A stretch of 37,655 nucleotides of DNA from Octopus bimaculoides. Lineage: Eukaryota. Every line of letters begins with the position of its first letter. The stretch's first letter is position 1. The stretch covers positions 30,093,875-30,131,529 of the forward strand of contig NC_069004.1 of the NCBI RefSeq assembly GCF_001194135.2, given 5' to 3'. Positions 7,581-37,655 of this stretch are shown here, one piece after another. The position numbers and the translations under genes were made by a program. The notes beneath the pieces are model-generated. The model saw only the letters and a program-made list of their open reading frames with translations. It was not told the origin of the DNA and did no database searches.

Positions 7581-7825
7581 AGTATGTGAGAGTGAAAGAG
7601 AGGGAGAATGAAAGAGAATGAAACAATAAAAGTGAGGTTGAAAAAGAGAGAGAAAGACAAAGAGAGAGCGAGGAAGTAGGTGAAAAGTGATAGGGTGAAA
7701 GAGAAAAAGAGAGAATGAATGAGAGGGAGTAAAAGAGAAAAAAGAAATGAGAAAGGTTTGTCAGGTAGGGAGAAGGAGTTATTTGAAATCCTGACCACTC
7801 TGTAACCAGTAGTAGTAGTACTTAC

Positions 7826-7883
7826 CGACAAAACTTTGAAATGCTAATCCAAGAATAAATAGCACGGTAAACAGAAGTTGCAT
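7826..7883 (-). CDS. Signal-peptide coding exon of a Spitz/Keren-like EGF-family ligand (copy 1); encodes MQLLFTVLFILGLAFQSFV plus 1 nt
   Basis: Minus strand: pyrimidine tract ending TTTCCAG, exon starts 7962, ATG at 7883, 19 hydrophobic codons, then G|GTAAGT donor (phase 1). Joins in phase to the exon at 1826 (G+AT = Asp), giving a V-D-A|C cleavage site. Confidence 0.85.
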
Positions 7884-7962
7884 AATTTGGTGGTGATTTT
7901 GATATTGGGTAGATTTGCCTCCGTTTGTAATCCAGAGTTGTTGGCCTTGATCATTTGAGATC
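7884..7962 (-). other. 5' UTR part of the copy-1 signal-peptide exon, with an out-of-frame upstream ATG at 7954
   Basis: Lies between the acceptor AG (7963-7964) and the ATG at 7883. The acceptor implies a further upstream exon. Confidence 0.65.
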
Positions 7963-8174
7963 CTGGAAAGGAGAAGAAGAAGAACAAGGGTTAAGAGAGT
8001 AGAATGAGAGGGGGAGAGAGAGAGAGTGACAGACAGACAGAGGAGGGCTGGAAGAAAGTAAGAAAGATATGTAACTAGATGAAGATAGATTGAAAGAGAG
8101 AGAGAGAGAAATAAAGATAGAAAGACACATATGTATAAAGAAACAAATGATGAAGGAAAAAGGTAGAAAGACAC

Positions 8175-8332
8175 AGGCGTGGCTGTGTGGTAAGTAGCTT
8201 GTTTACCAACCACATGGTCCCCTGTGTTCAGTCCCACTGTGTGGCACCTTGGGCAAGTGTCTTCTACTATAGCCTCGGGCCGGCCAAAGCCTTGTGAGTG
8301 GATTTGGTAGACGGAAACTGAAAGAAGCTGGT
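8175..8332 (+). mobile_element. SINE family A, 5' half
   Basis: GGCTGTGTGGTAAGTAGCTTG head, ends at GAAAGAAGC..TCG. Confidence 0.8.
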
Positions 8333-8335
8333 CGA

Positions 8336-8505
8336 ATCATCATCATCATCGTTTAACGTCCACTTTCCATGCTGGCATGGGTTGGACGGATTGACTGAGC
8401 GCTGGCAAGCCAGAAGGCTGCACCAGGCTTCAATCTGATCTGGCAAAGTTTCTACAGCTGGATGCCCTTCCTAACGCCAACCACTCTGAGAGTGTAGTGG
8501 GTGCT
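8336..8505 (-). mobile_element. RTE 3' tail fragment
   Basis: Same tail family with a (CAT)n end. Confidence 0.75.
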
Positions 8506-8652
8506 GGGTAACAACAAAACCTGTGCTCAATATACGTCCTCCTAGGGTTAAAAAAATTGATAGCCATGTTGAAGTGGCAACAAACATTACCTTTCAGTAT
8601 TGTTACTACTTACAGATGTTTTCAATCTAGTTTGGATTCTTTGTCATAAAAT

Positions 8653-8692
8653 TTGAATTCTTTGCAATCAAATTTGATTGCAAAGAATTCAA
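8653..8692. repeat. Perfect 40-bp palindrome
   Basis: TTGAATTCTTTGCAATCAAA|TTTGATTGCAAAGAATTCAA, no spacer and no mismatch. Confidence 0.95.
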
Positions 8693-33852: not shown

Positions 33853-35089
33853 CACCATACCTTGCTAAATTCTTGGTCCCCTCACCCCACCAAAAAAAAA
33901 AAAATTACTGGAAACAAAAGCAGTGTATTTCAACAGAAATTAGGTAAGAAAAGGAGATCAGATGGTGGTGCATATTTATTGCTCCTCAATGAATATTTTC
34001 CAGTATTTAACAGGATTCTCCAGTGTTTCCAACTCTCATACAGATCACAATATCCTTGGATATACTTTCGAGAACTGCAATAAGCAGATGTGCTTCATGG
34101 GGACACACCTTGGATTATAACCCTGCCTACATGATAAATTTATACATGTTTATGTGTGTTTCCTACTGTCACAAGTGCTTTTTTTTTTTTTACATGGCAC
34201 CATCATCAGTGCTTTTTACGCTGCACCAACACTTTTTATGGCACCATCACCAAAGCACCTGTATGTGCATATATATATCATGTAATGTTTATGTAGACAA
34301 TATTTGTAGGACAGTTAAGCCATTGGAGTACTAGTTAATGTAAAACAGGTCACTAGTGAGAGTAGTTTATATATATATATATATATATATATATATATAT
34401 AATACAAAGAATATATATACATGTATACACACATATGTACATACTTACATCTACATGTGTATATAGATGCATATCAGGGTACAGGACGTTAGAACAATGA
34501 ACTACAGACCATGGAACGAACACATAGGAAAACATAGCCACTTGGAATTAATCCTACGTCAGCTGCCTCTATTCTAACTAGACATTTTGAAATCTATGTA
34601 TATATGTATATATATATATATATATATATACACACACACACACACGTATATATTACCTATATATAGAAATACTTGCATGCAGACACACACACACACACAT
34701 ATATATATAGTTTGTGTGCAGTTGTGTGTGTGTGTAAATGTAAATGTATAACTTTATGTAAAATTTATTGGTTAAATTTGGAGACGCCCCAGACTTACAA
34801 TGTTTTCATTGTCATATTATAAGGTAAGAAGAATTATGATAAGCAAGAAAAGACAAAGCCCACCCACACACTATACTTCTCTGTGTGTGTGTGTATGAGA
34901 GCGCAGTTTTCTTTAGATAGAAAATACAGGTGAAAATGTGTCACAGTTGTAAAAAGGATTAAGGTAGTATCGTGACTAATGATATAAATAAAAGGAGTGA
35001 TGAATGGCTAATTGATATTATTACTTTTATTGAGCTAGCAGAAATGCTAGAATGTCATTAAAATGTCTTGCAATATTTCCTCCTGCTCT

Positions 35090-36690
35090 TTAAGGTGGTA
35101 GGCTGACAGAATCGTTAGCATGCCGGACAAAATGCTCCATGGCAGTTCATATGTCGCTATGATCTGAGTTCAAATTCTGCCAAGTTCAACTGCCTTTCAT
35201 CCTTTCAGGGTCGATAAAATAAGTACCAGCGAAACACTGGGCTCAATGTAATTGACTTATCCCCTCCCACAAACTTGTTCCCCTTGAGCCAAAATTAGAA
35301 ACCAATATTTTTCCCAGCTCTTTGTGTTCTGGTTTCAAATTGATTCAAAGTCAACTTTACCTTTCGTTCTTTCAGGGTCAACAAAAAGTACTGGGTCCAC
35401 AGTATTGACTAAATCTTCTCCCTCAAAATTAGGACCTTACACCTAAATCAGAAACCATTATTATTAATATCATTATTAAGACGGAGAGCTGGCAGAATCG
35501 TTAGCATGCCAGGCGATATGCTTAGCAGCATTTCATCTGTCTTCACTTTCTGAGTTCAAATTCCAACAAGGTCAGCTTTGCTTTTCATTCTTTCGGGGTC
35601 GATAAATAAGTACAAGTTGAACACTGGCATCAGTGTAATCAACATACCCCTTCCCCTGAAATTACTGGCCTTGTATAATAATAATAACAACGACGACGAC
35701 GACGACGACGACGACGACGACGGCGACGACGACGACGACGGCGACGACGGCGACGACGGCGACGACGGCGACGACGGCGACGACGGCGACNNNNNNNNNN
35801 NNNNNNNNNNNNNNNNNNNNNNNNNNNNNNNNNNNNNNNNNNNNNNNNNNNNNNNNNNNNNNNNNNNNNNNNNNNNNNNNNNNATGATGATGATGATGAT
35901 GATGATGATGATGATGATGATGATGATGATGATGATGATGATGATGATGATGATGATGATGATGATGATGATGATGATGATGATGGCAAGCTGGCAGAAT
36001 CGTTAGCATGCCGGGAAAAATGCTCCATGGCAGTTCATATGTCTTTATATCCGGAGTTCAAATTCTGCCAAGTTCGACTGCTTTTCATCTTTTCGGGGTC
36101 AATAAAATAAGTACCAGTTGAGCACTGGGGGTTGATGTAATTGACTTACCCCTTCTCCAGAAATTGCTGGCCTAGTGCCAAAATTTGAAATTACTATTAT
36201 TATTATTATCATCATCATTGGCAGTGAGCTGGCAGAATCATTAGCATGCTGGACGAAATGCTTAGCGGTATTTTGCCTGTCGCTATGTTCTGAGTTCAAA
36301 TTCCGCCGAGGTCAACTTTGTCTTTCATCCTTTCAGGGTCAATTAAGTACCAGTTACATGCTGGGGTTGATGTAATTGACTTAATCCCTCTGTCTGTCCT
36401 TGTTTGCCCCAATATTATTATTATGGTGGCAAGCTAGCAGAATTGTTAGCATGCCGGAAAAAATGCTAAGTGGTATTTCGTCCTACAATGAGCTCAACTA
36501 CCATCAAGGTCGACTTGGCCTTTCATTCTTTCCGGGTCCATGAAATAAGGTGCCAGTAGAGCACAGGGGTAGATGTAATCGACCAGACCCCTCCCACCAA
36601 AAAAATTTCATGCCTTGTACCTATAATAGAAAGGATTATTAAGGAAGTGAGTTGGCAGAACCATTAGCATGTTGGACAAAATCCTTTGAC
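35090..36690 (+). mobile_element. Head-to-tail cluster of about 6-7 SINE family B copies interleaved with trinucleotide microsatellites
   Basis: GCTGGCAGAATCGTTAGCATG-like heads near 35100, 35487, 35988, 36227, 36432 and 36650, plus a headless partial near 35310. Confidence 0.85.
35690..35985 (+). repeat. (GAC)n/(GGCGACGAC)n and (GAT)n tracts either side of an N-gap
   Basis: Directly visible; gap at 35791-35883. Confidence 0.95.
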
Positions 36691-36704
36691 ACATTCCTTC
36701 CAGA

Positions 36705-37120
36705 TACCACCATACCCGAAACCACTCCTGTTTCTAGGGCACAAACTTCCTGTTTTAAAGCAATCTAAATTTAAATTTTCCATTAAAATATTACGTTAAT
36801 TTATGTTCTGAATACAAGCTTAATTAATGACAAAAGTTATTTTACTAAATTATTCATTATTTTAACAATTAATTGAAACAAAGGCAGTGTATTTTTAAAA
36901 GAAACACTGTCACAGAAGTGGTTAAAATGGTAGAGTGTGTGGTTAGAGAGAGATTGTTTATTAAAAGGTATCAGCTGATATGAGCAATGACTAAGATGAA
37001 AAATGTACGTACTGACACCGAAAGATATGTACTAACCCTTTCGGTATCAATTTACCTGAGGCCACCTTTAGTCTACTGATACAAACTTCCTATTTCCACC
37101 CTATAGTGTTCAAACCAGCA
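36705..37120 (-). mobile_element. piggyBac-type MITE and fragments
   Basis: CAAACTTCCTGTTTTAAAGCAATCTAAAT..GACAAAAGTTATTTTACTAAATT..GAAACAAAGGCAGTGTATTT; second start TAACCCTTTCGGTATC near 37034. Confidence 0.6.
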
Positions 37121-37139
37121 TTGTTGTTGTGTTGTTGTT

Positions 37140-37312
37140 GGCACTCCGTCACTTATGATGTCGAGGGTTCCAGTTGATCCGATCAACGGAACAGCCTGCT
37201 CGTGAAATTAACGTGCAAGTGGCTGAGCACTCCACAGACACGTGTACCCTTAACGTAGTTCTCGGGGGATATTCAGCGTGACACAGAGTGTGACAAGGCT
37301 GACCCTTTGAAT
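37140..37312 (-). mobile_element. SINE family C, 3' half, abutting the inverted-duplication boundary
   Basis: GTTCCAGTTGATCCGATCAACGGAACAGCCTGCTCGTGAAATTAACGTGCAAGTGGCTGAGCACTCC is the reverse complement of the family C 3' region. Confidence 0.8.
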
Positions 37313-37313
37313 T

Positions 37314-37655
37314 ATCTCTCTTTCAATCTATCTCCCTTTAGTTACATATCTTTCTTACTCTCTTCCAGCCTTCCTCTCCCTCTCTCTCTCTCTCTCCTCC
37401 TCCACCTCTCATTCTACTCTCTTAACCCTTGTTCTTCTTCTTCTCCTTTCCAGGATCTCAAATGATCAAGGCCAACAACTCTGGATTACAAAACGGAGGC
37501 AAATCTACCCAATATCAAAATCACCACCAAATTATGCAACTTCTGTTTACCGTGCTATTTATTCTTGGATTAGCATTTCAAAGTTTTGTCGGTAAGTACT
37601 ACTACTACTACTGGTTACAGAGTGGTCAGGGTTTCAAATAACTCCTTCTCCCTAC
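37314..37655 (+). repeat. Right arm of the inverted segmental duplication (runs to the window end)
   Basis: Same alignment; homology is still unbroken at base 37655. Confidence 0.92.
37462..37591 (+). CDS. Signal-peptide exon of a second, inverted paralogue (copy 2); exon 37454-37591, in-frame ATGs at 37462 and 37534
   Basis: Acceptor TTTCCAG|G at 37453/37454 and donor G|GTAAGT at 37591/37592. The 58 coding nt from 37534 are identical to 7826-7883 reverse-complemented. Downstream exons would lie right of the window. Confidence 0.75.

Follow-up and report, generated by a model that had tools for sequence, protein, structure and literature searches.

A putative inverted copy of the signal-peptide exon of a Spitz/Keren-type EGFR-ligand gene in Octopus bimaculoides, probably homogenised by gene conversion

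We analysed a 37,655-nucleotide stretch of the Octopus bimaculoides genome (hereafter the window; assembly GCF_001194135.2, contig NC_069004.1, positions 30,093,875 to 30,131,529 of the forward strand), in which one short segment is present twice in inverted orientation. Copy 1 (window positions 7765-8101, minus strand; window positions are used throughout) carries a 5' exon of a gene that we identify as a Spitz/Keren-type ligand for EGFR (the epidermal growth factor receptor). Copy 2 (37315-37655, plus strand) is, in the reading that we consider somewhat probable, a real, derived, inverted DNA-level copy of this exon region that has been homogenised with copy 1 by gene conversion. The assignment of the gene to its family is a more solid result than the status of the second copy.

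The two copies are readily detected. BLAST within the window aligned copy 1 with the reverse complement of copy 2 at 322 identities out of 341 (4 gap columns, E-value 4e-124), in agreement with an earlier note on this DNA that had placed inverted copies at 7765-8100 and 37314-37655. A repeat search of the window resolved the pair into a perfect inverted arm of 119 nt (7808-7926 and 37491-37609, 100% identity) and a second arm of 178 nt (7924-8101 and 37315-37492, 92%). The duplicated segment has exactly one partner in the self-BLAST of the window, where families of short interspersed elements (SINEs) have 6-10 copies, and it is the sole two-copy segment that is not a SINE. Copy 1 consists of 139 nt upstream of the exon, the exon itself and 61 nt of intron 1. 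Copy 2 consists of 139 nt upstream, the exon and 64 nt of downstream intron, and exits the window at its right end. The alignment reaches the final base of the window and homology does not decay at this edge; the outer-side homology thus runs out of the window, as had been noted before. As assembled, the copies are divergent, with copy 2 pointing to the right and the 5' ends standing back to back.

Both copies retain a complete exon. In copy 1 it is 137 nt long (7826-7962, minus strand) and comprises a 79-nt 5' untranslated region (UTR) and 58 coding nucleotides that begin with the ATG at 7883-7881; it is bounded by an acceptor AG at 7964-7963 and a donor GT at 7825-7824. The exon of copy 2 (37454-37591, plus strand) has 138 nt, made up of an 80-nt 5'UTR and 58 coding nucleotides with the ATG at 37534-37536, between an acceptor AG at 37452-37453 and a donor GT at 37592-37593. 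Direct comparison of both exons bore out the earlier statement that the coding nucleotides (7883-7826 on the minus strand and 37534-37591 on the plus strand) and both splice sites are identical; the acceptor (TTCTCCTTTCCAG) and the donor (GTAAGTAC) are intact in either copy. The 58 nucleotides encode MQLLFTVLFILGLAFQSFV plus one further nucleotide. This is an N-terminal signal peptide, whose hydrophobic core and V-x-A cleavage motif can be read directly from the sequence. All the flank differences listed in the earlier note were recovered as well. Copy 2 has one additional homopolymer base in the UTR at 37493 (TTACAAAACGG in copy 2, TTACAAACGG in copy 1) and one additional GTA/TAC unit at 37610-37612, and the introns differ by one T/C substitution (7789/37631). 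On the upstream side, 11 substitutions and two offsetting indels, including a remodelled GA/CT tract, are found at 8012-8082.

To establish which copy is ancestral, we used the orthologous locus of Octopus vulgaris from a chromosome-level assembly (OX597837.1:39241586-39336653, about 95 kb, denoted L001). Positions 1-25,995 of the window (minus strand) are collinear with 45,807-800 of L001 according to 40 of 43 chained BLAST anchors, the other three being SINE matches. On the strength of this collinearity, copy 1 is the ancestral gene. O. vulgaris homology continues on both sides of copy 1 and remains alignable for about 290 nt beyond the breakpoint, including an orthologous SINE. By contrast, the homology of copy 2 to copy 1 and to O. 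vulgaris ends at 37314/37315, and the sequence upstream of copy 2 gives only chance-level scores against both. Since copy 2 breaks off at a junction across which copy 1 and O. vulgaris continue, copy 2 is the derived copy. The earlier note had homology ending near different SINEs on the inner side; this holds for copy 2 (37315) but not for copy 1, where the ancestral sequence simply goes on.

The junction of copy 2 lies within about 37305-37316, where CCCTTTGAATTAT is followed by CTCTCTTTCAATC, that is, where a SINE body meets the ancestral (CT)n tract. It is non-homologous and situated 139 nt upstream of the acceptor of the copy 2 exon. The abutting SINE body (37144-37314, plus strand) has no tRNA-like head. 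Other members of its family occur at 11069-11237 and three times in L001, and because other family copies run past the junction point into a tRNA-like head, this one is truncated at the junction. Copy 2 probably arose through a non-homologous rearrangement whose inner breakpoint joined the (CT)n tract to a SINE that lost its head. The SINE upstream of copy 1 (8172-8528, no strand assigned) lies outside the duplicated segment and occupies the orthologous place in O. vulgaris, which makes it an old insertion. Between this SINE and (CT)n, copy 1 has a local duplication of about 45 nt (8102-8171, TGTGTCTTTCTAYCTTT twice) that is absent in O. vulgaris.

Neither anti-diagonal BLAST nor Smith-Waterman comparison of the non-repeat pieces against shuffles revealed homology that resumes inward of the breakpoint. 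Two other origins of copy 2 were considered and rejected. One was that copy 2 derives from copy 1 by loss of 3 kb, with the deletion reaching as far as the SINE at 11069-11237. However, that element is only 84% identical to the SINE next to copy 2, below the family copies of O. vulgaris, which speaks against the deletion. The other was a retrocopy; copy 2 retains intron sequence to either side of the exon (139 nt before the acceptor, 64 nt downstream) and therefore is not one.

Divergence between the copies is distributed very unevenly. We classified the variable sites in a three-way comparison that included O. vulgaris. Over the 90 junction-proximal nucleotides (8012-8101, pairing with 37404-37315 of copy 2, plus strand), both copies differ from O. 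vulgaris at 5 sites, copy 2 alone at 10 and copy 1 alone at 4. In the remaining 247 nt (7765-8011), the respective numbers are 9, 0 and 1. The copies thus have 14 differences per 90 aligned nucleotides near the junction, as against 9 sites between copy 1 and O. vulgaris over the same tract. Copy 1 agrees with O. vulgaris at 10 of these 14 sites, and copy 2 agrees at the other 4, retaining the O. vulgaris base at 8078, 8056, 8045 and 8027. The divergent tract gives way to an identical core (37405-37630, plus strand, pairing with 8011-7790), which has no substitutions over 222 nt and only two simple-repeat indels. Within the core, the copies share 8 differences from O. vulgaris (9 over the whole of 7765-8011). 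These 9 shared differences are situated in the UTR and introns, and selection alone therefore cannot explain the identity of the copies.

The contrast in site patterns between the two tracts is significant (Fisher P = 0.0017, or 0.013 if multi-site slippage-like changes are each counted once). So are the 222-nt run free of differences (P = 2.5e-5) and a Sawyer-type run test on the variable sites (P = 0.011). The core thus has significantly fewer differences than its flank and also shares derived states between copies, although collapse of near-identical paths by the assembler could mimic part of the pattern. We infer that the core owes its identity to gene conversion. The simplest history would run as follows. 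The duplication, judged from the 90 nt adjacent to the junction, would date from about the time at which the O. vulgaris lineage split off, and a later, recent conversion event of at least 222 nt would have made the exon, the UTR and the splice-site flanks identical in both copies. The earlier note had left the pair as either young or gene-converted; the second description is favoured by these tests, and the first is not.

A very young duplication without any conversion would need another source for the differences, such as error-prone repair at the breakpoint (for example, microhomology-mediated break-induced replication, MMBIR) combined with microsatellite slippage. It is true that copy 2 carries the derived state at 10 of the 14 differing sites, all of them at most 90 nt from the junction. 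Moreover, seven of them fall into two runs (8030-8038 and 8017-8019), each of which might represent a single slippage event. However, 8078, 8056, 8045 and 8027 are derived in copy 1, three of them outside microsatellite sequence, and mutagenesis of copy 2 cannot produce sites that are derived in copy 1. In addition, copy 1 has changed at 4 of 90 sites near the junction as against 1 of 247 in the remainder. We therefore regard such a recent origin as improbable.

Before turning to artefacts, it is useful to consider how the scaffold is built. The window contains ten runs of N. Neither arm touches one and no reading frame crosses one. Four of the runs (1186-1195, 4063-5029, 5472-5899 and 35791-35883) are missing from the program-made gap list. 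Copy 1 resides in the contig 5900-12325 and copy 2 in a contig of 1,772 nt (35884-37655); the arms are 29,213 nt apart, with seven N runs (1,453 N) between them. Collinearity with O. vulgaris corroborates, in both order and orientation, the joins at 12326-12843, 15525-15542, 16334-16858, 18511-18520 and 21754-21838, and likewise the pair of gaps within intron 1. The O. vulgaris sequence that was retrieved does not extend to the joins at 33517-33720 and 35791-35883, each of which has microsatellites on its flanks; 35791-35883, the gap nearest to copy 2, lies between (GAC/GGC)n and (ATG)n. Since these two joins lie beyond the reach of the O. vulgaris comparison, both the spacing of 29.2 kb and the inverted orientation are inferred by the scaffolding over the last 4 kb.

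This bears on the possibility that there is no true second copy and that copy 2 is an assembly artefact, whether the junction contig of a heterozygous inversion (8102-37314), a haplotig or a chimera formed via (CT)n. An inversion of 8102-37314 would put the reverse complement of 7765-8101 exactly where copy 2 is seen. Copy 2 is also on a short, repeat-rich contig behind the two uncorroborated gaps, its junction is in low-complexity DNA, and the core differs by one single-nucleotide polymorphism and two microsatellite-type indels, much as alleles do. Nevertheless, in the junction-proximal tract more sites separate copy 1 from copy 2 than from O. vulgaris, and an allele retaining the O. vulgaris base at four sites would have to predate the species split. 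The resumption of identity only 90 nt from the junction also fits poorly with inversion haplotypes, which should be uniformly diverged. We consider an artefact of this kind unlikely. The earlier argument that the divergence gradient speaks against a simple haplotype duplicate is thereby upheld, on the grounds of both the excess of junction-near differences and the four retained O. vulgaris states.

Copy 2 might also be a genuine paralogous fragment whose true place is elsewhere in the genome, or whose true orientation is different, and which was mis-scaffolded here. The last two joins are the uncorroborated ones and, besides copy 2, only about 136 nt of the contig (37008-37143) are not repeats. 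On the other hand, we would expect cross-mapping of read pairs to set such a contig beside copy 1 in the same orientation, and not inverted on the far side. Mis-scaffolding seems to us a rather remote explanation.

Several observations nonetheless weigh against a real, converted duplicate. Only 341 nt of copy 2 lie inside the window, and their contig (1.77 kb) is attached via the two microsatellite-flanked gaps discussed above. The junction is in low-complexity (CT)n, where short-read assemblers can form chimeras. The identity of the core is possibly exaggerated by assembler collapse of two near-identical paths, and the 90-nt tract offers small counts that are partly from microsatellite sequence. 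Comparison with a chromosome-level assembly of a related species, as proposed in the earlier note, confirmed copy 1 as syntenic, but a second signal exon did not turn up in the 95-kb L001, either in the 33.5 kb upstream of the O. vulgaris exon or in the 51 kb downstream. This negative is limited by the fact that the expected O. vulgaris position of copy 2 falls outside L001, because the syntenic interval is 1.8 times longer in O. vulgaris. The O. vulgaris annotation likewise has one gene and no second. As to the length of the interval itself, window positions 8000-26000 (18 kb) correspond to L001 800-33500 (32.7 kb), which points either to more repeat insertions in O. vulgaris or to collapsed repeats and under-sized gaps in the assembly of the window.

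The gene of copy 1 can be followed further within the window. Its signal-peptide exon, the same exon with the same acceptor that is used by the O. vulgaris proteins CAI9740344.1 and CAI9740345.1 (L001 33515-33650), is followed by a 6.0-kb intron and by exon 2 in a continuing frame. Exon 2 (1610-1826, minus strand; L001 counterpart at about 40087-40307) codes for (D)ACSRK, then a linker rich in Ser/Thr and then cysteines 1-4 of an EGF domain, ending in ..NCTEEQISSTSCLNGGVCFSMMLGGSKASAC-AA before the donor gtaagt. The intron that follows splits a codon between the fourth and the fifth EGF cysteine, which is the position of an intron in the EGF motif of vertebrate EGF-family genes. The remaining exons fall beyond the left end of the window. 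Only 15 nt separate this end from the exon 3 acceptor (CPAKYTGLRCEALAFHP in O. vulgaris, at 45823 of L001), so the second half of the EGF domain is cut off. In O. vulgaris, the gene continues with exon 3 at 45823-45874, exon 4 at 79530-79634 and exon 5, which ends at 85068 of L001. Because the domain is split by an intron, a search of the window for the complete EGF pattern returned microsatellite noise only.

The family of this gene was less obvious from the window than from its relatives. When searched against Pfam and PDB, the 92-residue fragment encoded in the window gave only a sub-threshold match to Trefoil/TFF2, with neuregulin at an E-value of about 1. A Trefoil (P-type) domain (15.2 bits, E-value 0.02, against a cut-off of 21; TFF2 E-value 0.05) was rejected, as two of the six trefoil cysteines are absent, the losses involving the first one and the adjacent CC pair, and addition of the next exon yields a canonical EGF domain. 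An exhaustive phmmer search with the same fragment found two O. vulgaris proteins at 97% identity together with spiralian and arthropod relatives. The O. vulgaris orthologue is 96-97% identical over the 92 residues. CAI9740345.1 (162 residues) is a precursor with a signal peptide, an EGF domain, a transmembrane (TM) segment and a short tail, whereas CAI9740344.1 is a shorter isoform from the same exons; the two represent one locus and no paralogue. CAI9740345.1 completes the EGF domain (...ACKCPAKYTGLRCE) by supplying KCPAKYTGLRC. In terms of the pattern CX7-9CX4-5CX10-13CXCX8C with GxRC, the window provides cysteines 1-4 and the O. vulgaris orthologue the remainder. Shortly after the EGF domain, the orthologue has a TM helix, IAGIAAGITSCILVLILVMCVIFVYI, encoded by its exon 4, the equivalent of which lies beyond the window.

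Profile comparisons gave a consistent assignment. The Pfam EGF profile matches all eight members of the family, each below the cut-off (for CAI9740345.1, 15.8 bits against a cut-off of 21.5). Conversely, a profile built from the eight members matched neuregulin-1 (5e-10), Spitz (4e-9), heregulin and EGF in PDB, ahead of Notch-type EGF repeats. In a large protein collection, it matched entries named by their sources as spitz, spitz-like, keren, probetacellulin and pro-TGF-alpha-like. Alignment with the named proteins showed that the cysteine directly behind the signal peptide is invariant, as are five EGF cysteines out of six (in the insect sequences a gap displaces the first), G-x-R-C and, where the TM segment starts, A-x-I-A-x-G (A120, I122, A123 and G125 in the family alignment). 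The A-x-I-A-x-G element is a candidate rhomboid motif; a literature search for the Spitz motif string gave nothing. We conclude that the octopus gene is a Spitz/Keren (TGF-alpha-type) EGFR-ligand gene, whose product would bind and activate an EGFR. The label of EGF ligand in the earlier note was therefore correct, the orthologue having supplied the missing EGF half and the TM segment.

The invariant cysteine follows directly after the predicted cleavage site (VDA followed by CSRK in octopus, ACSSR in insect proteins source-named spitz or keren) and is preceded by D/E-A/G. Both this cysteine and A-x-I-A-x-G are invariant in octopus, cuttlefish, bivalve, chiton, nemertean and insect spitz/keren-named proteins. 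Their conservation from insects to molluscs, chitons and nemerteans suggests that palmitoylation of the ligand N terminus and intramembrane release may be ancestral to protostomes. In Spitz, Rasp palmitoylates the N-terminal cysteine, which is also present in Keren and Gurken; vertebrate ligands lack an N-terminal cysteine (PMC8061759).

As in Drosophila Spitz and Keren and their arthropod and spiralian relatives, the octopus precursor combines a signal peptide, a Ser/Thr/Pro-rich linker, one six-cysteine EGF domain (CLNGxxCF, GxRC), a TM segment starting with A-x-I-A-x-G and a short tail, and the family profile matches the Spitz structures 3ltf and 3c9a with E-values of 4e-9 to 9e-9. It differs from Spitz and Keren in its length of only 162 residues and in the spacing of 9 residues between the first two EGF cysteines, and its palmitoylation and rhomboid cleavage are putative. 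Vertebrate neuregulin-1 is the best match in PDB, followed by EGF and EGF/TGF-alpha chimeras. Unlike neuregulin, however, the octopus ligand has neither an immunoglobulin domain nor a neuregulin cytoplasmic domain.

Searches for further records of the gene were largely negative. The protein collection contained no protein of O. bimaculoides itself for the gene of copy 1, which is apparently unannotated in this species. Nor was any protein other than the two O. vulgaris isoforms present in it at 90% identity or above. Exact-product look-ups of three open reading frames (ORFs) through copies 1 and 2 returned no record, and a metagenome scan with a 64-nt exon query gave 0 matches. The cuttlefish Acanthosepion pharaonis has an orthologue, CAE1282271.1, that spans about 184 kb as one gene, with an NSMCE1-like gene 3 kb past its 3' end. 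Since the O. vulgaris gene spans 75 kb, very long introns appear to be typical of the cephalopod ligand gene.

If copy 2 is real, the question arises whether it is a gene in its own right. The earlier note had suggested a local expansion of EGFR ligands, that is, two complete, expressed and divergent genes, which would be a special case of the converted duplicate. Copy 2 has an undamaged ATG, signal-peptide coding sequence, acceptor and donor, its homology shows no decay at the window edge, and two functional genes could well go on being converted or stay identical. However, copy 2 has one exon only in the window, its downstream exon not being visible there; two complete transcription units were not found, and a second exon 2 is present neither in the window nor in the 95 kb of the O. 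vulgaris locus. Beyond the 139 nt upstream of the copy 2 exon, everything is replaced by repeats. This includes the counterpart of a candidate upstream 5' exon of the copy 1 gene (21304-21332, minus strand, 29 nt), which is located between the copies and shares a conserved ATG and GTATGT donor with exon 1 of the O. vulgaris isoform CAI9740344.1. The candidate exon lies in TG/TA microsatellite-like DNA and could be either a real 5' exon or an annotation artefact. A single gene in O. vulgaris and the lack of any other closely similar protein in the collection also speak against two genes, as does the finding that surveyed molluscs have one EGF-type or NRG-type ligand each (PMC4914847). We consider two complete and expressed genes to be an unlikely outcome overall; given that the copy is real, its being a complete gene is possible, if on the doubtful side. 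A bolder version, to which we give little credence, is a head-to-head pair of complete Spitz-type ligand genes that predates the O. vulgaris split, shares a regulatory interval of about 30-50 kb, has its 5' ends kept identical by recurrent conversion and has had its second member missed by annotations.

The rest of the window offered little else. No neighbouring gene was found among the ORFs of at least 70 residues between the copies, all of which are derived from microsatellites or SINEs, and neither Rfam at gathering thresholds nor ARAGORN reported anything in the window. At 15224-15668, 26-nt tandem repeats (...AAAAGCACTGG...) extend across the 18-N gap at 15525-15542, with the units in register on both sides and 98% identical. 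About 230 nt are locally duplicated in direct orientation at 31669-32086, as seen from a pair of similar ORF fragments (...FQLSNTFL.ILAV...); this duplication has no connection with the inverted copies.

A converted duplicate would have parallels elsewhere. Interlocus gene conversion between paralogues is well documented (PMC3966223). The sharp switch from diverged to identical sequence and the derived states shared relative to an outgroup resemble palindrome arms and inverted segmental duplications that undergo intrachromosomal conversion. Unlike palindrome arms, the octopus copies present a visible arm of 341 nt, a spacer of about 29 kb and a gapped scaffold. As an event, a partial inverted duplication that carries a conversion tract is nothing unusual. 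The membrane-tethered EGFR ligand is single-copy in the molluscs surveyed so far (PMC4914847). If real, copy 2 would represent a lineage-specific duplication affecting the main membrane-tethered EGFR ligand of a cephalopod, and a second, promoter-swapped copy could bring new expression domains. The more useful by-product is one of annotation, namely that an unnamed O. vulgaris protein and the corresponding gene of O. bimaculoides can be identified as Spitz/Keren orthologues.

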